Origin: Iphione sp. A-MEVVRFRX5
Lineage: Eukaryota
Assembly: GCA_976226885.1 (NCBI GenBank)
Contig: OZ320319.1
Span: forward strand, 14,880,001 to 14,944,000
DNA: 64,000 bases
Direction of reading: 5' to 3'
The first letter of the stretch is position 1. Every line of letters starts with the position of its first letter. The notes below the pieces were generated by a model, which saw nothing but the letters and a program-made list of their open reading frames with translations, was not told the origin of the DNA and searched no databases. Both the position numbers and the translations under genes were made by a program. Positions 7,001 to 19,194 of the stretch are shown here, piece after piece.

Positions 7001-9440
7001 ATGTACAAAGAATGCCATCAATAGAATCCTGTGCATATTCATGGCATTTTAGATAATATTGCAAGAAAAGCTTCGAATAACGCCCGTCGTGCAGTGACAA
7101 TACCTTCATGCATAACGAAGACACATGCACATATCCCATGGACAGTCCTGGGTATTAAAGCAAATTATTGTCTAGTTTCAAATGAACGTGTCAAATTTTA
7201 TGATACACGGAGGGGTTTTCTTCGGTGAAACATGAAATAATTGAAAAAAATGAGCAGAAATGGAAGGTTTGTGAGACATCGACAGTTATTTTTTTCTCCA
7301 TCTGGAGTGAAAGAGGAGGATGCGCGGGTGGAGTATGTGTCACGTGACATAACTCTGCTTGAATGACGGTGAAATAATTTAATGAAACTGTCAGCGGGAT
7401 GGTGAAACCCGTTACAATGATCAATAACTAGGCATGGGCTGTCCCATTCTAACGGAGAGGGGTGGGTGGGAAGGAGGTGCCCCGACCCTAACAAGATGAA
7501 GTATAAATTACTTGGAATTCCAATCAACGCTCGAATCAGAGTGAACTGTAAGCCATTTCAAATAAGGAACCGACAAAGTGCAGACAGCAGCCACGCTTAA
7601 AAAGGACGCATCAAGGAGTCTGGTATTGTTTTCAAATGGCAAATAACTTGGTACAGTCCCATCACTTTGGACGTGAGCACGACTAGGGGACGTCAGTTCT
7701 ATTGCTCACAGTGTGGCAAGTATCAAATTTTCATCTCTCGACGCTCCCCGCGAAGAAGCCCCCCCCCCCCCAGCCATATTTTTACCTAGAGGAAGCAGAA
7801 CCTCCGTATTTTTGCCACCAGATGTCGCTCGGTACTAATGAGCTGAGAGCCTCGGTTTTAAGGAGCCAATAAAAATAGAGAATTTGGTGATTAGGAGGAG
7901 CCTCGATCCGAATAGTATAGAAATTAATGGCGCGCTAGTTGCGCCCCCTTTTAGTCAGCAGTACATTACAGCGGCCTAGACAACCTCGAATTAAAGAAAA
8001 ACTCCTTTCATTTAAAGCGAACATTATAAATTGGGATCCAGAGAAGATCGCTGGGCTTAGCGGGCAGGACATTTCCCAGGCATGGTCGACGGCATGGACA
8101 CACATGTATGAGACTGGTATTAATCAGCACCCATCTGGATCTGGTGGGATGGAAGGAGTCCGCCACTGGGAAACATCCCACTTGTTACTTATTTTTTACA
8201 TGATAAGACACCCTCTAACATAATAGAATAAATAATTGACGAGGCAGGGTGTGAACATATTACCATAATTAGAAAAAGCTAATTTATTAAATATTCGTTT
8301 TTTTCTAGGTAAGGTAAAAAAAGATAAATACGTGTAGTTAAGAAAACATTGGTCGGCTGAAGTTGTGATTCGCCTAAAGTTAGTATACCGAATTTCTGAG
8401 AACATACCATTACAGAACAAATTCCGTCAACACAAACAGAGGAAGTCTTTTAATGTGATTCCCTTTTAGAGTCGGGCTTTACGCTTCCTAGGAAATCACA
8501 GTCAAGCACATTGTCTACAATCCTTGAACCCAGCCTGGGATTCAGCCTGAAGAAATCAAGCAAGGATCGTAAATTTATCTTAATCATCTCTTCTACAATA
8601 ACTCCCATTACATTTCATTGGTGTTTTCCCCGAGGAAAAACCATGTAAGAATGTATTTTGCAGGCCCGCCACATCAAGTACAGCCACCATTGACCACGTG
8701 GTCGTGATTAGGCTTGGAAACACTTGTAACCTACAGATTAGAACCAGTGGCGTCCTCAGGGAGTCGCAAGTCCAGCAGCCAGCAGTTGCAAATAAAACTG
8801 TGCAGGTTGCGAATCATCAGTTACTGCCAGAATCTAGTGGCTCAAACATGAGTTGCCAATTCACTCTTCCTTAAGTCAGAGATGGGCAAAAATTGAGAAA
8901 AAGAGAGGCCTATATGTATACACAATATAAAGAGAGAGACTAGTGGAATCAAAACAAACTCACTGTTTCCAGAACTGTCTTTGTATTCATCAAGCAACTG
9001 CCATTTTACATTCCAAGCTTTCAGGTGAAGTCCTCCCTTCATCAGGGATATGGTGGTTGTGTTCAAGACGCCTCGACTTACAGCCTTTTAAAATAGGCAA
9101 CTACCGTAAGATGAAGTGAATATGTCAAAATTATCATTGGTTTGGTTTTACCGGGCTTTTGAGTTCGCATTAGAATATGCAGGAACTGCCTGATTATATC
9201 CATTCTTCATCTCTGTAACATTTTTCCTGAATTAAAAAATCTAGGAAAAGATTTAAATCTATACACTGATGCGCTACTTTAGATTTTATGACCAACCTAT
9301 GCATTTTTCACAAGGGATTCATATGATACCACTGAAATCTGTATTAAATTAGACTTGTTTACACTTTACTGGCAGCAAGTACCCAGATCTCCCACTTGAA
9401 GAATATGTCTCAAGAGTTCATGTTGTGCTCAAATGTCTTT

Positions 9441-9489
<49 letters not shown>

Positions 9490-9827
9490 AGAGCGTATGG
9501 GATAGGGGTAGTGATATTTATTATTATTATTATTATCTTTATTTCGACTGGTAATTGGTCATACAAACTTAATGTATTTGCTACCAGCATTAATCCGGTT
9601 GTATTACTTAGGCTCTCGTAGGATTATTTACATACGTAACAGTTCATCTCTGCAGCATAACATCCTAGGTGGTTCATCTAGTTCTTAGTGGTCTCATTTC
9701 ATTTTGAGTATGCTCCAATCAAGGAAATTAGGTGTCTGCATTCTTTCCGCATGTTCTTGGAATATGTTGTATATTCTAGTATTTTATAATTGAAATTACA
9801 TCATTTGTGACATTATAACAATTATTA

Positions 9828-10112
9828 GGGTAACACCCATACCATAGCATTCTAACAATTTAACTGTTCTTAGTCTGTCACTGGGTAACACCCATACCGG
9901 CATCACTTAGTAATATTGTATTTAGTAATTATTGGGTAACACCCAGACCAATCGTTCACTAGGTGAATGCAAATATCTCCCATCGGTGGGTAACACCCAC
10001 TCTCAAATCAGCTGATAAAGACTATATTTATTGAGACTGTAATTATTGGGTAACACCCAGACCAATCATACACTAAGTAACTACAAATATCTCCCATCGG
10101 TGGGTAACACCC
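9828..10112 (-). repeat. Six regularly spaced GGGTAACACCC hairpin motifs in the LINE 3' UTR
   Basis: Copies start at 9828, 9883, 9934, 9988, 10048 and 10102 (spacing 51-60 nt). The last four lie within a tandem duplication of about 114 bp. Confidence 0.9.
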
Positions 10113-10341
10113 ACTCATAGTTCAGCAGATAAAGACTATATTAAATTTGTTATTAATTACATAGCAGATCTAAACAAGATTAAATTTAGTAAGGCAGGCT
10201 ACTACTAGGATAACATCCAATTATCAACATATTTTATACCTTGTGTTTTATATTAAGCCACAGTACCATCATGGAGATGGGATACGGTGGGGAGCAAGGT
10301 AATTTTAGTCTCGTCATACATTCTAGTATTTTTTCCAGTTA

Positions 10342-13300
10342 TTAGGGCACATTGAAGTTACAGGTTATCTTCTTATTTCTTCTAATTCGTTTCCATAATG
10401 ACTTCATCTGTTTAGGTGAATAGTTGGTTTCCTCTACCGTTAGCTTTGACCAGAGAGTCTGGAAGTAATACCTGGGTGATTTTTTAAACATTTCCTTTTT
10501 TGGCCAGGTTATGTGAATGGGCCTCTTGTCACTTGTCCTAGTAGCGTACGTATTTTGTCTGAGTGGTTTGATTTTCCTAATTAACTCAGTGCTACTATAA
10601 CCCAGCCTTAGTATTGTTGAGTCTATAGCACCCATTAGCTCCTCTTCGATCTCGTGGCGAGAGGGTACCCTTCCTATTTGTATGACGCACCTATAGTAGG
10701 CCCTCCTCATACTGATCAGTTTCTCGTATTCAGGGCATCTAGTACTTGCTAGGACAAAATTTCCGTATTCGAGCACAGGTAAAAACACTGTTTTCATTAG
10801 AGTCGTAGCCACACTCACATTTATATATTTTCTAATATGTCTAAAGTGCTTCAATTTCGAATAACCTTTGGCTAAAATATCATTCAGATAGGGCTTCCAA
10901 CACAGTTTCGAATCAATTACTATCCCCAGGTATCTAAACACATCTACCTCTTCTATGTCAGTACCCTTCAAATTTATGTTTAGTTTTCCAATATTTTTAT
11001 TTTTCATAAATGTCATTACCTTTGTCTTGTTGGTATTAATAAGAATCTTATTTATGTCAGACCATGCCGCAATGTTTGATAAGTCTGACTGTAGTTGATC
11101 CCTGCTGGCTTGATAGCTATCTCCTGAACTAATGACAGCTACGTCATCCGCATAGATTATACACTGACAGTGTTTCAGTATGACTGGCAAATCATTGATA
11201 AACATTAGAAATAGGAGGGGTCCCATAATGGAACCTTGCGGAACCCCGCAGTCTATTTTTTGTTCTATGGACTCCACACCCTTGTATACAGTTTTCTGAT
11301 GTCTGTCTTTCAGGTAATTTTCAAACCACGGAACAGCTTCTTGTAATCCAAGTCTCTTTAACTTGTCGAGTATAATCATGTGTGATATGGAATCAAATGC
11401 CTTTGAAAAATCTATAAACCCGACACAAATGTATTTACGGGCATTGATTCCACAGTATATGTAGTCAAGTAGTGTATAGATCGCAGTGTCTGTCCCTCGA
11501 TGTGGTCTAAAACCATGTTGACAGTCAGTCAATATCTTACCGGCCTCCAGATAATTCATAATTCGAGAATATAGGATTTTTTCCAAAAGTTTCATAATAA
11601 GTGGCAGTTGACTAATCGGCCTATAGTTATTCATATCACTCGGATTACCTGATTTAAAGAGGGGTGTAACTATTGCTGTTTTCCACGATAATGGTATTAC
11701 ATTGGTCTCAATACTGCAATTAAATAAATGTTCTATTTCAGTTGCCACAACAAAAAATATATCCTTCCATATATAGTTTGGGAGGCTTAGTATCATACTA
11801 GCCTTCTTGTTTGGTATTTTAAAACTATACTCAATAATCTCTAATAGGGTTATAGGTGTCAGTTTAACTCCTTCCTGACCACCATAAATGGTGCAATTTG
11901 AAAGTGTAGCTATGGGTCAATATAGCTTATTCTTCCCTTGCTTTTGGTACAGTACAGAGTTCGTAATGTTATATATCATATGAAAGCCCTTGAATTTTAC
12001 TTCATTTCTAAGCTTATTTTGTTCTATATATTTGGTTACCATGGTAACAAGACAGGGTTCAATGTAAGATATGATCATGAAAATTTACATCAAATTTTCA
12101 CTAATTATCATAAATGGTTGAAAAAAAACAAAAAATATCACTTTTAGAAAAAAATGTTCAATTAAGAAAGTGTTCAGGAAGTGATTTACAGTCTTTTGAT
12201 ATATAATTTGTTACTGTAGATGGAACTGGTCACTTTTTATGACAGTCTGAGATGATGTATGCTTACATCAAAAATGATGTCAATGATGTCACAGATACAT
12301 TTTTCTACAAAATCATGTGGTTACCATGGAAACAGGGTAAACACTAAATTATTACTTTTACCATGGAACACCTTCAAAATGTCATAACTTTCATTTTGAG
12401 GTAAATTTTTTCCGGAGTGAAACAAATAAAGACAATAACTTATGGTATAGAGATATTTTATACCATTAAAAACAAACTTTAGTGTTAGTGTCTAAGTATG
12501 AGCAAGTCTATATCACAAGATATCCAAGGATTGGCAATGTATTTTATATTTTCATAGTAACAAACTAAGAAAACCTATCAAATAAGATTCAAAACAATAT
12601 CTTAAAAGAATATTCTTAAAAATAACCTCACTTAATTATAAAATAATATGTTGTTTGCTGTTATAAAGGGTTATCAAGAGTCAAATTAGCTGATAGTATG
12701 AAAAAACTGCTAATAACGCAATTTAGGGCAAAGTCATGTGACAATCATGGTGATTTTCCATATTGCAAAACAGAAATTTTAGATTCATTCATTTAGTTCA
12801 TACCTTCTTGTACCTGAATCATCTATTTATTTGAGAATAAGTACCTAGATTTTAATGTGGTACTCTTCTTAACGATCCACAGGCTTATGTACCAAATGTG
12901 GTACATAAGCCAATGGGTGGTCAGGAAGGAGTTAAATCGATTAGATACTGTAAGTCCTTGATATGCGTATTCATAGTGTTGCAACCGAGATGCTACCTTA
13001 CTTCCCACTTGGGCAAAATGCTGGTTTAAGTCATTAGCAAGTTTTAGATTATCCTCACAGCCCAGGGACATTTCAGGTTTCTTATTTCCAATTCCCAGGT
13101 CCATTTTTAAATTGTTCCAGACTTTTGATGGGTCATTTCCTGCCTCATCAACCCTACTCATGATACATTGTTTTCTGAGTGCTACCCCCAGTTTACGACA
13201 CCTGTATTTCAGAATTTTTTCTTGTAGCTTATCAAACGGGTTGCCACTTTGCAAATATTTTTTATGTTGATGATGTTTTTCCCTAACCAGGTCTAAATAC

Positions 13301-14259
13301 TCCCCTGATATCCATTTTGGTTTGCCGCTACGTACAGTGGTTTTCTTTTCTGGGCACAACCGATTAATTATTATTGAGATTTTGGCTGTCATTATCTCCC
13401 ATTTCTCACTAATACATTCATTTTCATAGAAGTCTGTCCCGTCTATTCCCATAACCATCCTTGACAGTGCAACAAGATTAAGTTTCGAATAGTTTCTGTA
13501 AGTGATAATTTTTCTCTTTATCTTACTACGCACATTAGTCATTAATAATATCTCAATAGCCTTATGATCACTAATGGCCTTGTCCAGAACCTCACAATTG
13601 ATATTATCTGTGAAATTACTTAAACATAGATCAATTATCATTTTCGTATTACGAGTTATTCTTGTGTAATCCTTTACCAATTGTACAAAGGAATTTTCTC
13701 TACAAAATTCCCTAAGCCTTGATCTAGGATTGTTCCTAACGGCTCAGTTGATATTCAGATCACCGACAATGATAACTTTACTAGAAAGGCCTATACTTTC
13801 CAGTATTGTATTTAATTTTGATATTGCTAATGCAACCTTCCCACTTGGTGGACGATAGCAGACAAGTACATAGTAGACAATATTATTCCAAAGGGTGATT
13901 TTGATTACACAAACTTCTAAGTCTGGACTAGTATCCGTCATTAAAGACATATGTTCATACACGACATCTTCGAGATCTTTTGTATAGATCAGGATACCGC
14001 CACCTATTTTGCCTACCCTGTCATTTCGTATTATACTATAACCTGTTTTCTTTAGCAGTGCTGACGGAAAGTGCACATCCAACCATGTCTCAGTAACAAA
14101 AAGCAAATCTGGGTCCAGGTTATACAGTAGGAGACTAAACTCTTCCATCTTACCTTTGATACTCCTAATATTGATATGGTACATACTCAACGCTCCAGTC
14201 ATCTTAGCCATTTGTGGTTCAACACCACGCCACCATCCATCCATACGAGAGCCGTCCAT
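10342..14259 (-). pseudogene. APE endonuclease-reverse transcriptase ORF, interrupted by one TGA and a MITE
   Basis: APE motifs: HINIRS, FVTETWL, RNDR..GGG, CYRPP, GDLN, IDL, SDH. RT motifs: YRPISQL, QHGFR, FIDFSKAFD, GVPQGSIMGPLLF, YADD, YLG. Track ORFs 13744-14259 and 12823-13680 share a frame separated by TGA at 13744-13746. Removing 1068 nt (MITE plus one TTAA) joins them in frame to 10342-11796, giving 950 codons. Confidence 0.93.
11868..12931. mobile_element. piggyBac-type non-autonomous element (MITE) inserted in the LINE RT ORF
   Basis: Perfect 16-bp TIRs CTCCTTCCTGACCACC (11868-11883) and GGTGGTCAGGAAGGAG (12916-12931). TTAA duplicated at 11864-11867 and 12932-12935. Confidence 0.92.
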
Positions 14260-15305
14260 ACACTATCTGCTACTGAATTTGCAACATATCTTTTATAAAG
14301 TCTTTCTATAATCGGTGTATCAGAGAGCATGCTTATTTAACAACCGGTGGTTTTAGTTATAAGAAACTATAGGAAAGAGAAATTATATATCGTATATTTT
14401 AGACAAATGTACTTGAAAGAAACAGATAATTAATTGTGCACTTATAAATTCAGACTTTGTCTTATTGTCTATTAATATAACAGTATTTCTTTCTTCAATT
14501 GACCACCTACCACATATTGGTTGTCCGCGACGAGGCCGACCCAATAATCCGTTCTTTTTCTTCTATTAAGAATATTTTCAGTGCAACAAATTTGTCACAC
14601 GAGCTACAAAACATCTTAAATTAAAGCATCAACTACATGTGAGAGAGTGAATTGTTTATTAGTATATGTTCAATTTACCAATCTCTAAATAGTATGCAAG
14701 TAAGCATATGGGTGCCAGTGGTAACGACGCAGAGAATTATTTTCTCCTAACGTAAGTGGGTATGTACCCAACAAACATCAAATACATCAAGTTTCAACTC
14801 AAAACTTATAGGTTAATTCTATCTAAATTTCGAACACATAGTATTTAGTCCAAATTAACAACACAATACAGATAAATTTGTGTCATCAGTATCGGAAAAA
14901 CTTACTTCGAATACCAACTATTTAGTATAGTTGGTTGTGTTTACAATCTAGCTTTTGGATAATCATCCAATATAACTTAAATAATTAAACGCAACAAAAG
15001 TAAAACAGAGCAAGGGAATAATAACAGATTATAGCATCCGGGATAAACATCCCCGCCATAAATAAACTCAGTACATACTGTAGCGTATATAACGGTTAGA
15101 CAATAAAGGATAAACATCCTACACTTTCTTACCGTTAACGAGTATGTGTTCATATGGCCCACATTTTGTTATAAAGTCATCAATCTATGATTTGCATTTT
15201 ACAAAGGATAAACATCCTTCCTCGAATTCTATATACGTTAGTCTATAGGTAACAGTGGATATCTTATGGCTCTCGTTGCCTTCACGTCAATGTATTACTA
15301 GTAAG

Positions 15306-15989
15306 CTACCAGCCACTACCATATATCAGTTTTTCGAGAGCCTTGATTATTTTCTTTACGACCTTACGTTTCCAACGTAATCGTAGATGAGTGCCATCCC
15401 TCAGCCTGATCAACCTATGCCGCCACATACCCTGGTTTCTGGAATGCACTACTGCATTTACCCAGGGTGTTGGGACTCCAAATGTTCGGTTTATCATGGT
15501 TATTCGCTGATTGATCAGCGTTATGGCGTGATTGATCAGATCTTGTATTCGACTTGTTGCACCTGTGTTGCCCAGGTAGCCGTTCAAGTAGTAGTTGGTA
15601 ATCCCGTAGTCGACACTAAATATTGTGCACAACATTATTACACTGAACGGGTACCTCATCTGTATTTTCGTTCTACTGTCCCAATACAAACTTTCCATCC
15701 GTTCAGCTGCAGCTATTGAGGAATGAAAACGTGGCACCACATATCTGAGTCTATTTCCTTCTCTGTCCATGCAACGAAACATCCTCGTGACATTATTGCC
15801 CCCGCAGAGGACCACTATAATACTGGGATACGGGTCCCAGTTCCCTGTGACAATATGTTCCGTCAGTTCTTCCATTTTGCAACCTGGAAAATATACCACG
15901 TTCACGAACCAACCTTCTTCATTGAAAAGCTGTTTCATTCCACGTCCGTGGCTACTCGAAAATAGGTAGATGAAGGGCTGTAAAGCCAT
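15306..15989 (-). CDS. SGNH/GDSL-type esterase, stand-alone ORF of the LINE (227 aa from first ATG)
   Basis: Block I-like IYLFSSSHGR, block II-like FPG, block III-like VLCGGNN and block V DGTHL, in the expected order and spacing. The track start at 16055 is a TTG; the first ATG is at 15989. Confidence 0.8.
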   Translation of the reverse strand: MALQPFIYLFSSSHGRGMKQLFNEEGWFVNVVYFPGCKMEELTEHIVTGNWDPYPSIIVVLCGGNNVTRMFRCMDREGNRLRYVVPRFHSSIAAAERMESLYWDSRTKIQMRYPFSVIMLCTIFSVDYGITNYYLNGYLGNTGATSRIQDLINHAITLINQRITMINRTFGVPTPWVNAVVHSRNQGMWRHRLIRLRDGTHLRLRWKRKVVKKIIKALEKLIYGSGW

Positions 15990-16105
15990 TTTCCCAATCT
16001 CACACTGATGTATAGAGCCGCCGGTATCACACTGTACTGACGTTGCCCGGATCAATGGCCCGTTCGTAAAATGCTCTTCCCAGAGGATGACTGATCAAAC
16101 ATGGT

Positions 16106-17905
16106 TTAAGTATCCATTTCTGACTCCTCCTCCTCGTTCAATTCAGCCCTTGTCAGCTCCAATAGCCTACCGAGCCAATTCTCACCTGGATAACTCTTTT
16201 TGGGGATTTGCTTAGAGTTTTTCATCACACCAGCACCCCAGAATCTGTTCATTGTGCCTTTGACCAGTGTCCTTTTCCCAGTTTCTAATAATACTTTTTT
16301 TAACTCAGGATGTTGACTAAATTTGTTCCATAGTAATTCTTTCATGATTTCCTTTTTTTGGTCATCCCAGCCTTTGATATCGGGCAAGTCTCGTCTTAGT
16401 TGTTTCATTTCGCTGTAGCGGGTAGTATGAAGTGATTTCGCAATTTTTGACTGAACATTAGCAGCACAGCTCTTAGCATATGTATAAGCTTGTTCAACAT
16501 GAAGGAATTGTTTTTCATCCCATGTGAAAGGTGCTTCATACAGATTCGACAACGGTGAAGAACTGTCTGCGAAGCTGATTGTATCTTCATTTTGTTCCTC
16601 GCTCTGATTTGTCTTTTTAGAGCCGGTTTTATCTTTCGATCCCGATTCATTTTCTCGACGAGGATTCCGTTTCGACCTTTTATTTCTCTGTATCAGAGCA
16701 CTTGCACCACCATTCCCTTCAACTCGTTGAACACTCGACTGTAACTTCGGTTCACTCAATTCGGGAATGTCCGACAGTTCATCAACCTTGTAAAACATCT
16801 CTCCTATTTGGATACCGTTATGCTTTACAGTGAACTCTAGGTCAGGATTCTCTTTCTTCAGCGTCCTCACAGTTTGTCTGATTTGATATTGCTGGTTCCT
16901 TTCTGTCACTGTCAGATCAGGATTTATCCATATACGTTTGTTTTTTAATTTGTTTTTGTTTCTGAATACCTCGGAATGTTTTGTATTACGAACCAGTTTC
17001 ACAAAGACTGGCGGTGTCGCTGAGGGATCCTTTCTGGGAACTCTATATACTTGGTTAATTTCAGACTCATGGAACTGGATTCCCAGACCTCTAATAAGGT
17101 CAACAACCTTTTTAGTTATATTTTCCTTGTCCTTGTAAGCAAGTCCTTCTATGAAGAAATTGTTTGCTCTGAGTCTCTTGTCAACCTCTTCATTAATCAG
17201 TGGTACCTTGGTAGTTGCAGTATTGGTGCCATCATTGTTGTCGAGCATCTCAGCTACAGACTTCGTGTCCTCACAGAGCTTTCCTACTTTGTTTGTTAGC
17301 TCTTTAATATCGTTGTCTTTAGCAGTAGTCATTGATGCTACGTCCATTCTCAACTTTTCCCTCTCAGATTGCGAGATTTTCAGAGTTTCTTCAATCTCAG
17401 TTAGTTTCTCTGTGTTCGCTTTTATCTGTTTTGTATTCGTATCAAGCCGCGTAATAAGGTTTGATAGTTCAGTGTTTATCTTTTCACATTCCATGTTTAA
17501 ACAGTCACGTATCTCCTTGAGATTTTCTTCACCTTGCTTCTTGATCTCATTAAGTATTGTATAGACAATTGTTGACTCATTCTCCTTGTTTGCGGACCCA
17601 TCCTTATTTACTAGTAATTCCGTGAGCGGACTATTTTCTTTTTTCCGTTTTCTAGCAGCAGCATCCGCATCATTCACGTTTGGGGTGAGTTGTAAACTGT
17701 TTTCATCGATTAAATAGTCCTTTATACTAGCCTGGAACCCTCCTTTAGCTGTTTCCGAACACTCCTCGGTTAGCTTCATTGAGACGACACTCACCTGATC
17801 ACTGTTGGTAATTGGGACGGTATTACGTAATACCTGCTCCCCGCTCTGATTTGCAGTACCCCCGCCCACCTTTTCTGCCACCGTTGTACTGATATTTCCC
17901 TCCAT
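16106..17905 (-). CDS. LINE ORF1 protein: coiled coil, L1-ORF1-like RRM/CTD region, charged linker and C-terminal NADAR (YbiA-like) domain (599 aa)
   Basis: Heptad-rich region, then RANNFFIEGL...VYRV...PPVFVKL...IWINPDLT..ER, typical of L1-type ORF1p (about 16850-17180). The C-terminus PLSNLYEAPF..VEQAYTYAK..W...K.EIMKELLWNKFSQHPELKKVLLETG..LV....RFWGAG...GENWLGRLLELTRAEL matches the NADAR pattern (about 16139-16573). Confidence 0.88.
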   Translation of the reverse strand: MEGNISTTVAEKVGGGTANQSGEQVLRNTVPITNSDQVSVVSMKLTEECSETAKGGFQASIKDYLIDENSLQLTPNVNDADAAARKRKKENSPLTELLVNKDGSANKENESTIVYTILNEIKKQGEENLKEIRDCLNMECEKINTELSNLITRLDTNTKQIKANTEKLTEIEETLKISQSEREKLRMDVASMTTAKDNDIKELTNKVGKLCEDTKSVAEMLDNNDGTNTATTKVPLINEEVDKRLRANNFFIEGLAYKDKENITKKVVDLIRGLGIQFHESEINQVYRVPRKDPSATPPVFVKLVRNTKHSEVFRNKNKLKNKRIWINPDLTVTERNQQYQIRQTVRTLKKENPDLEFTVKHNGIQIGEMFYKVDELSDIPELSEPKLQSSVQRVEGNGGASALIQRNKRSKRNPRRENESGSKDKTGSKKTNQSEEQNEDTISFADSSSPLSNLYEAPFTWDEKQFLHVEQAYTYAKSCAANVQSKIAKSLHTTRYSEMKQLRRDLPDIKGWDDQKKEIMKELLWNKFSQHPELKKVLLETGKRTLVKGTMNRFWGAGVMKNSKQIPKKSYPGENWLGRLLELTRAELNEEEESEMDT

Positions 17906-19194
17906 TATCACTCAAACAGCCCTTTCTATCCCTTATTTACTCCTTTTTGTAGTGACAAATTGTCTATTTAATGCAGACTTTAAACGCACCACTCTCACAT
18001 GTAGGTAGCTATAGAATTAGTTAAAAAATATCACTCACTATACCATGTTTCCGCCGGCCTCACCACGGACGCCCTGTGTGTACGTCTTTACGCACTGGCA
18101 GCCATATAGAACCATTGATAGATAGGCATAGAAGATATATGAAGAGAGAGAGAGAGAGCTAGAGAGAAAGGAGAGAAAGAAAGGTAACAGGAAACGGCAA
18201 GTAAAGGAGAGAGGTAAGGAAATAGATAAACAGAAATGAGGGAGACAAAAACAGGGGTGAACAAACAATAAGACCCAGCGAGACATTTAGATATAGCTAC
18301 AGGGATTTAGAACCCAGAGCAGGGCTTTTCTAATTACCGTGCGATCAGAGTTTAGTCAGCAAAGTGCGCAATATACATCTGCCTTTAGATATATTAAGTA
18401 GTTGTGATTAGCGACTGTGCAAATCAATTCTAATAAAACAACATGTCGTTTGCATGTTCTTGTTACACATTTCGAGGAGAAACGAATCAAATGTTCCAGC
18501 ATGAAGCATAACTACCAGCGCCTCCATCGGCAGCTCTCAACACTAATTCGTTTAGTTTCGGCTTTTTCCACTAGAGAGAGTTGTCAGTCATTCTCACTAT
18601 CCGACAGATGTCAGCACCCGCTATCTACGTGGAAACGTGTCCGCTGCAGCCAGATTCTAACTCAATATATAGACATTTTCATGTTTATCATCAACATAAT
18701 TAACATCATAAACATGATTTCCATAGAGAAAATACATGTACGTTCATTTGCACGCGCAGATGTAACTTGAATAGCATAACTCTGCACTTCAACGCTTTCA
18801 GTGATCATCGGTCGATATTTATTGTCCAATCTTAAGACGTCTATACCAGGTATATCCTATAAAGTTCAAATTAATGACATCACTTATTGTTAGCATATAT
18901 AAGCCGTTTGTTTCACCACAAGACATGTCTTTCTATGAACCACCACCAACATCTACTTTTCTCTGGGTATATCCTCCAGTTGACCCACCACTGAGCACTA
19001 AACGAATCTGTTACTGCCAGACGTTTACAATAAAGTTACAGAAATAGTACAATGCCCACTGTGAAAAGAAAACATAACACACTGTAGCAATGACTGAGTG
19101 ACGTTGAAAAACCATTAGGTTCTGGAGTTTAATATAATTTTGCAACAAATACAGGGAATATTATGAACTAACACATATTGATGTTTAAAAGGCT

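Follow-up and report, generated by a model that had tools for sequence, protein, structure and literature searches.

The locus considered here raises the question of why a retrotransposon should carry a NADAR domain on the protein that packages its own RNA. It lies in a window of 64,000 nucleotides (nt) from Iphione sp. A-MEVVRFRX5 (contig OZ320319.1, positions 14,880,001 to 14,944,000; "the window" denotes this whole stretch of analysed DNA), in which a copy of a long interspersed nuclear element (LINE) on the minus strand begins with a first open reading frame, ORF1, that ends in such a domain. What animal NADARs do physiologically is recognised as an open question (PMC11125620), and for the search for a natural substrate a LINE whose RNA-packaging protein bears a NADAR is a concrete place to start. 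The window holds an inactivated copy of a three-ORF LINE; the answer argued below, to which we assign a probability of about one half, is that in active members of the family the NADAR domain would act as a self-carried repair or counter-defence enzyme.

The identity of the reading frame and of its C-terminal domain is the first point to be settled. Both are encoded on the minus strand:

16106..17905, minus strand: ORF1, intact, 599 aa from the ATG at 17905, with the stop codon at 16108-16106.
16130..16573, minus strand: NADAR domain, YbiA-type, aa 445-592, identified by Pfam PF08719 and by fold match; the most conserved region of ORF1.

The ORF1 reading frame amounts to 601 aa if counted from the upstream GTG at 17911, and the coding stretch (17905..16109) finds itself in the genome with 100% identity at G000:C15:14896109-14897905. 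PF08719 (NADAR) is the sole significant Pfam-A family on the ORF1 protein; the match (E 2e-27, 96.9 bits against a gathering score of 35.1) extends over aa 449-591 and covers positions 8-162 of the 163-position profile. A sequence search of the PDB with ORF1 retrieves E. coli YbiA (2b3w, 4.4e-7) and the Phytophthora nicotianae NADAR (8bau, 1.5e-4). Seventeen natural paralogues went into an AlphaFold2 (AF2) model of aa 236-599, whose mean predicted local distance difference test value (pLDDT) is 80.8; the model consists of two folded parts (pLDDT ~90) with a disordered stretch of ~55 residues between them, the NADAR part exceeding a pLDDT of 90. In a Foldseek comparison of this model with the PDB, the top match is 8BAU (E 6e-8, template-modelling (TM) score 0.69 on the target), followed by YbiA 2b3w (1.2e-7, TM 0.75), at a domain identity of ~24-27% to both; the domain thus has the YbiA fold, in which small sheets flank a helical core. 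Pfam, PDB sequence and fold searches thus agree with the earlier note on this DNA, which had placed a NADAR at 16139-16573 (aa 445-589), and all the motifs listed there (SNLY, E-x6-K, W..K..M, WGxG and GxNWLGxLL..R) were found.

Upstream of the NADAR, the protein is built in the order of an N-terminal region with a KRKKENSP-like motif, a coiled coil, an RRM, a C-terminal domain (CTD) and a basic disordered linker. Substitution rates in the list are given as the ratio of nonsynonymous to synonymous divergence (dN/dS):

17627..17650, minus strand: basic/NSP motif KRKKENSP, aa 86-93; no variation at K86, R87, K89, N91, S92 and P93 among 17 intact ORF1s.
17243..17581, minus strand: coiled coil, aa 109-221, predicted as a parallel homotrimer in a three-copy model.
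16751..17200, minus strand: RRM plus CTD core, aa 236-385, AF2 pLDDT ~90, with a beta-alpha-beta-beta-alpha-beta plus CTD topology.
16574..16750, minus strand: basic, disordered and fast-evolving linker, aa 386-444, pLDDT <50; the least conserved region of ORF1, with dN/dS of at least 0.25.

The core matches ten chains of the human L1 ORF1p trimer or RRM-CTD in Foldseek (6e-5 to 1.5e-3; structures 2YKP, 2YKO, 2YKQ, 2LDY and 2W7A), and the L1-type core that had been proposed upstream of the NADAR is therefore upheld. Pfam Transposase_22 (PF02994) is not matched by the ORF1 sequence at E≤0.1, and a profile of the RRM-CTD core returns only noise from PDB sequences; since the sequence searches gave no match, the relation of the core to L1 ORF1p rests on fold and domain order. 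Regarding the oligomeric state, a three-copy model of aa 105-385 obtained a score of 0.66, compared with 0.00 for the best control, with a/d heptad contacts along aa 109-221; the runs share at least 86% of their contacts and have a pLDDT of at least 75. The 0.66 mark is reached by 21 of 30 proteins solved as same-chain pairs and by none of 23 solved as single chains. Because the human L1 ORF1p trimer (2YKP) has been solved, this pass may partly reflect memory. The ORF1p core is probably trimeric, the model being a statement of likeness and not of binding. Taken together, the L1-type ORF1p part (coiled coil, RRM, CTD) and the C-terminal NADAR are genuinely fused in one frame.

Two further observations concern the N-terminal part of the protein. 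The KRKKENSP-like motif is possibly a nuclear-localisation signal or a site of proline-directed phosphorylation. Near the start of the coiled coil, C135 and C140 are invariant in 17/17 intact ORF1s and could be a candidate inter-chain disulfide or metal site.

The fusion is not confined to the window. A six-frame search of the 1.18 Gb genome with ORF1 yielded at least 155 matches from 4,412 first-look candidates, many of them open frames of 514-640 aa with core and NADAR in one frame. Seventeen intact ORF1s share 36-46% identity with that of the window, and their densest invariant columns fall in the NADAR. When 30 loci were fetched, most were found to carry a conserved 227-aa ORF after ORF1, and six elements of the genome have all three ORFs intact. 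Two of these six, L031 (G000:C1:3428058-3438057) and L032 (G000:C10:70596083-70606082), are ~99.7% identical over ~7.2 kb with all ORFs open; this near-identity on different chromosomes indicates recent transposition of a NADAR-bearing lineage.

The same architecture is widespread in public data. An exhaustive HMMER search of 1.84 billion cluster representatives with a 17-sequence profile returned 28,555 matches at E≤1e-3 and 222 at E≤1e-30, and the core is followed by a NADAR in 140 of the best 150 representatives, so that no fewer than 140 distinct public sequence clusters contain a LINE ORF1-NADAR. A word-based protein search with the whole ORF1 and with aa 236-599 returned nothing; given the thousands of matches found by the exhaustive profile search, this null result reflects a limit of word-based candidate selection. 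In the ESM Atlas, NADAR-bearing clusters of 415-489 aa are commonest in annelids, and contigs of other assemblies carry ORF1-NADAR directly upstream of an ORF2 with an apurinic/apyrimidinic endonuclease (APE) and a reverse transcriptase (RT). The multicopy family anticipated by the earlier note is thus established by many diverged intact copies in this genome as well as by the public representatives.

In a tree of NADAR domains, all 32 from this genome form one clade with a support of 0.99. Furthermore, pairwise distances of the core and of the NADAR are correlated (r 0.64; 0/300 permutations as high), as expected of an old fusion whose two parts have co-diverged since. Collectively, these findings show that the fusion is ancestral to a large and old family of invertebrate LINEs.

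Several public sequences differ from this plan and are recorded separately. The top profile match, XP_048255699.1 (P0001) from the abalone Haliotis rufescens, is 4,240 aa long and has seven NADAR domains in tandem, and other unnamed proteins (P0002, P0016, P0033 and P0035) contain 3-5 tandem NADARs, with variable catalytic positions; such tandem multi-NADAR proteins may be genes of the host that share a relationship with the LINE NADAR. Many public ORF1-NADARs (P0004, P0007, P0012, P0034, P0036, P0058, P0070 and P0124) continue for an extra 150-350 residues after the NADAR. These extensions match neither Pfam nor the esterase profile and may represent an additional C-terminal module in other lineages. 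An esterase fused to ORF1 in other lineages was also considered and was ruled out, with 0/150 representatives matching the esterase profile.

The earlier note knew of no NADAR described among the accessory domains of non-LTR ORF1 proteins and allowed that a previous record would remove the novelty, which has partly come about. Several Tx1 LINE families of Crassostrea gigas in Repbase have been noted to carry a NADAR in their ORF1 (Genome Biol 2025, PMC12477816), and the same paper describes one at the Pol N-terminus of one Ectocarpus Gypsy lineage. A full-text literature search combining NADAR, YbiA or DUF1768 with LINE, ORF1 or reverse transcriptase brought up nothing else relevant beyond PMC12477816. 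The LINE ORF1-NADAR fusion is therefore already noted in the literature, only in passing; what is added here is the trimeric L1-type context, how large and old the family is, how strongly it is selected, the conservation of the active site, the three-ORF layout and the state of the copy.

That the domain is under selection, and not drifting neutrally, is supported by dN/dS. Synonymous sites are saturated between most lineages, and the values for the NADAR come from three informative pairs of copies:

L010/L011: dN 0.032, dS 0.62, dN/dS 0.05.
L020/L021: dN 0.058, dS 1.15, dN/dS 0.05.
Window copy/L002: dN 0.034, dS 0.585, dN/dS 0.06.

For the window/L002 pair, dN/dS is 0.06 in the RRM-CTD and 0.25 in the linker. 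Over all pairs, the proportion of nonsynonymous differences (pN) is 0.28 in the NADAR, the lowest of any ORF1 region, 0.375 in the RRM-CTD and 0.63 in the linker. Purifying selection on the NADAR is strong and equals in strength that acting on the RRM-CTD.

The residues under constraint were located by a phmmer alignment to 8bau, in combination with the residues described in PMC11543638; E43 and K50 of 8BAU correspond to E88 and K95 of the E. coli C7 NADAR. Counts refer to the 140 fused public representatives, with the 8BAU residue given first and its counterpart in the window copy second:

E43, E471: E in 135/140, D in 4.
K50, K478: K in 95/140, R in 32.
R79, R504: R in all sampled copies of this genome; mostly G in public representatives, where the column may not be equivalent.
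W89, W513: W in 136/140.
R93, K517: K (few R) in this genome; variable in public representatives (K 70, R 9).
E125, position 549 (Lys in the window copy): E in 133/140.
D130, N553: mostly D in public representatives; N or H in this genome.
W133, W556: W in 131/140.

The Glu at position 549 is present in 31/31 other intact copies of the genome (16 aligned and 15 of a second clade), and the same 31 copies all keep the equivalents of E43, K50, W89, E125 and W133. The YbiA family is defined by this last-strand Glu, and the DarT1-associated enzyme needs the corresponding Asp for its activity (PMC11543638, PMC11125620). As aligned, the ADP-ribose-binding and N-glycosidic-cleavage residues of solved NADARs are conserved family-wide.

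The window copy departs from this pattern at the hallmark Glu. It keeps E471, K478, R504, W513, K517 and W556, and the hallmark last-strand Glu is replaced: codon 549 (16259-16261, minus strand) is AAA (Lys) at the site of the catalytic Glu of the family, which the earlier note had missed. A sister copy, 88% identical, has GAA at this codon, and the changed G follows a C; E549K is therefore a transition at a CpG that this dead copy alone carries. The alternative that K549 is a feature of the lineage was ruled out by the same sister copy. Such a change is what decay after insertion would be expected to give.

That the copy is dead is apparent from the remainder of the element, which is laid out as follows:

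9518..18106, minus strand: whole LINE copy, ~8.6 kb including a foreign insertion of 1,068 bp; layout ORF1-NADAR, SGNH esterase ORF, APE-RT ORF2.
17906..18106, minus strand: 5' untranslated region (UTR), ~200 nt, common to the sister copy up to 18106.
15306..15989, minus strand: esterase ORF of 227 aa with an SGNH/GDSL fold, a separate ORF downstream of ORF1.
14260..15305, minus strand: spacer of ~1 kb that separates the esterase ORF from ORF2 and contains four short hairpin motifs (14957-15217).
12934..14259, minus strand: 5' part of ORF2, APE endonuclease plus linker, matching Pfam Exo_endo_phos; in-frame stop between 13744 and 13680.
11866..12933, no strand assigned: repeat insertion splitting ORF2, exactly 1,068 bp; a young high-copy repeat.
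10342..11865, minus strand: 3' part of ORF2, reverse transcriptase plus C-terminal region, a 484-aa open frame.
9518..10341, minus strand: 3' UTR, with six spaced hairpin motifs at 9828-10117 and an (ATA)n tail at ~9518-9537.

The upstream limit of homology, 18106, was set against the sole close sister copy (L002/L015, 86-88% nucleotide identity), and the sub-lineage of the window is rare, with just one other copy in the genome above 75% nucleotide identity. In a tblastn alignment with the intact ORF2 of L034, aa 1-429 align to 14211-12934 and aa 430-932 to 11865-10345, the latter with 54% identity. The in-frame stop in the 5' part falls between frames of 171 aa and 285 aa. The 1,068-bp repeat has at least 40 full-length copies elsewhere in the genome at 94-99% identity (2,687 first-look candidates); its positions 1000-1063 are self-matching in reverse orientation, a palindrome close to one end, and it is a young non-autonomous element. 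The LINE copy is therefore full-length but dead.

The 227-aa ORF, its codons at 15989..15309, gave nothing significant in Pfam, one of 17 members reaching Lipase_GDSL at 0.0026, and was therefore assigned to the SGNH group by fold search: its AF2 model (pLDDT 80.6) resembles PAF-AH, sialate O-acetylesterases and GDSL lipases (E ~2e-4). In 17 copies, no variation is seen at S12/S13, G63-N66 and H201 and next to none at D198; the mean column identity among copies is 76% for this ORF, compared with 43% for ORF1. Among the public contigs, one (L041, unrelated) carries an esterase ORF and two (L039, L040) carry none.

Intact copies have an esterase-ORF2 spacer of like length. The hairpin motif of the spacer (repeat family D3/D10) is GGATAAACATCC, present four times, and that of the 3' UTR (family D2) is GGGTAACACCC, present six times with a spacing of ~54 nt; on the element strand, each of GGATAAACATCC and GGGTAACACCC gives a G-rich stem and a loop of TGTT type. 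These motifs may be protein-binding or translation-related RNA elements. A (GA)n microsatellite at 9440-9500 lies directly beyond the (ATA)n tail.

Regarding the clade, the ORF2 of intact relatives is 902-946 aa long and contains Exo_endo_phos_2 and RVT_1 (E 1e-36 to 1e-38), and by these domains, an endonuclease and a reverse transcriptase in ORF2, the element is an APE-type LINE. In a comparison of intact ORF2 with the PDB, L1 ORF2p is absent from the matches even at E 5, R2 proteins being the best, and no Cys-rich or Cys-His motif was seen at the ORF2 C-terminus of intact relatives; for these two reasons an assignment to Tx1/L1 is doubtful. A word-based protein homology search with intact ORF2 gave only unnamed matches at ≤30% identity, and no clade name came from it. 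On account of its ORF2 matches, its C-terminus, the esterase and the microsatellite-like tail, the element looks more like the CR1/L2 assemblage than L1/Tx1, a tentative placement.

What the domain does in active members can now be considered. L1-type ORF1p forms trimers that coat the RNA of their own element. In active members of this family, the ORF1p trimer would coat the element RNA and so bring three NADAR active sites into the ribonucleoprotein (RNP). There, these sites would hydrolyse ADP-ribose on guanine or cytosine, whether the base belongs to the LINE RNA, to the single-stranded target DNA or to the growing complementary DNA (cDNA), where uncleared adducts would block translation or reverse transcription; such an activity would amount to repair or counter-defence carried by the element itself, like the phage orphan NADARs directed against DarT1. 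The known chemistry is consistent with this proposal, as ADP-ribose is stripped from G and C bases in DNA and RNA by members of all four NADAR subfamilies, among them YbiA-type enzymes and one from a sponge (PMC11543638, PMC11125620, PMC11833690, PMC12945103). A base-ADP-ribose hydrolase carried into the RNP is, we infer, the most economical reading. The PARP part of the counter-defence proposal in the earlier note is a poor fit to known NADAR specificity. The window copy would no longer perform such a function, because its ORF2 is interrupted and its catalytic Glu is a Lys.

Three points may be set against a repair or counter-defence role. With its broken ORF2 and K549, the window copy is itself no illustration of the function. 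In the genome of the host, searches for an ADP-ribosyltransferase (ART) of the pierisin/Scabin or cholera-toxin type with PF22596 (Scabin-like) and PF01375 (enterotoxin) gave no match; the controls were silent too and CARP-1 is divergent, and these null results are uninformative. Finally, the C. elegans NADAR protein SNA-3 acts in the SL1 small nuclear ribonucleoprotein (snRNP), with no link to defence.

The last of these points leads to the main rival, in which the NADAR serves the RNA biology of the element itself, by an N-glycosidase or ADP-ribose-derivative step on the LINE RNA or RNP, for example in nuclear RNA handling. This is a possible, distinctly less probable explanation. The authors of PMC12477816 propose processing of RNA intermediates for transposable-element NADARs; the NADAR domains of SNA-3 are needed in the SL1 snRNP; nidoviruses, which are large RNA viruses, have repeatedly gained a NADAR beside RNA-processing enzymes; and the strong, long-term constraint in every lineage, whatever the host, would be accounted for. 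However, no such housekeeping substrate is known for any NADAR, base ADP-ribose removal being the sole demonstrated activity on nucleic acids, and most LINEs dispense with a NADAR altogether. A second reading would make the domain a non-catalytic module that reads ADP-ribose, NAD-derived groups or nucleotides and thereby recruits, tethers or assembles the RNP. It draws on the Lys at the catalytic position of the window copy and on the variable catalytic positions of many tandem multi-NADAR proteins, but the Glu is kept in 133/140 fused representatives and in all 31 other copies sampled in this genome, E43 in 135/140, and K549 is private to the dead copy and stands at a CpG, as decay after insertion predicts. 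Because the catalytic residues are conserved, such a reader role is less likely, and we consider it improbable.

Least credible, to the point of being nearly dismissed, is a passenger: a metabolite-repair N-glycosidase like E. coli YbiA, which hydrolyses riboflavin intermediates, without a role in transposition. The YbiA-type signature, a Glu in the last strand, and YbiA as the closest fold would suit it. A passenger would not, however, stay in the ORF1p frame at a dN/dS of 0.05 over lineages in which silent sites have reached or nearly reached saturation, and it would not co-diverge with the RRM-CTD; moreover, YbiA-type enzymes also act on ADP-ribosylated DNA (PMC11125620).

The removal of base ADP-ribose thus being preferred, a wider conjecture is that base-directed ADP-ribosylation of the CARP-1/pierisin type would be a form of anti-retrotransposon immunity in invertebrates, which the element would evade through three NADAR "eraser" sites per ORF1p trimer acting on RNA and cDNA. 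We hold this to be speculative and rather unlikely as a whole. If true, the evasion would be the eukaryotic transposon counterpart of phage anti-DarT1 NADARs. Guanine ARTs of the CARP-1 type are reported mainly from bivalves and from some cnidarians and sponges (PMC12945103). More generally, should base ADP-ribose on LINE RNA or cDNA prove to be the substrate, ADP-ribosylation of nucleic acids would emerge as a mechanism directed against transposons in animals, and an enzymatic accessory function would be added to ORF1p; with another substrate, the domain would still mark a new step in the biology of the LINE RNP. The window copy itself adds little, because it is a decayed member of its family.

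The element can be compared with several known systems. The C. gigas "Tx1" ORF1s (PMC12477816) are likewise LINE ORF1 proteins with a YbiA-type NADAR in a marine invertebrate. They were reported as a passing remark, without analysis of selection, active site, distribution or architecture, and are compared here by description only; as reported, they differ from the present element in that a separate esterase ORF occurs here and the Tx1/L1 placement is doubtful. Human LINE-1 ORF1p (type II; 2YKP, 2YKO, 2LDY) shows the same order of N-terminal region, trimeric coiled coil, RRM and CTD, whereas ORF1 here adds a 60-aa linker and a 150-aa NADAR and lacks a Transposase_22 sequence match. With 8BAU and YbiA (2B3W), the LINE NADAR shares the fold, and the E-x6-K motif, the Arg/Trp phosphate-binding residues and the last-strand Glu are kept in the LINE family; those proteins stand alone, whereas the LINE domain is fused to an RNA-binding protein, and D130 is Asn or His here.

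The esterase has its closest parallel in the type IV ORF1 proteins of CR1/L2 elements (ZfL2-1, PMC3905857), where an SGNH-fold esterase likewise precedes ORF2; in contrast to ZfL2-1, the esterase here is a free-standing second ORF after a type II ORF1-NADAR and does not lie within ORF1. The NADARs of an Ectocarpus Gypsy Pol and of invertebrate nidovirus polyproteins (PMC12477816, PMC11848433) are independent gains by RNA-templated parasites; they sit in Pol or in the replicase, not in ORF1p, and belong to a different class of element. The T4-like phage orphan NADARs that oppose DarTG1 (PMC11825919) share the proposed logic; there too a mobile parasite carries a NADAR without a cognate toxin. 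The phage enzymes belong to a distinct subfamily, with His at the hallmark position, and their target ART is known, whereas the LINE lives in a eukaryotic host, in whose genome the searches described above gave no ART.

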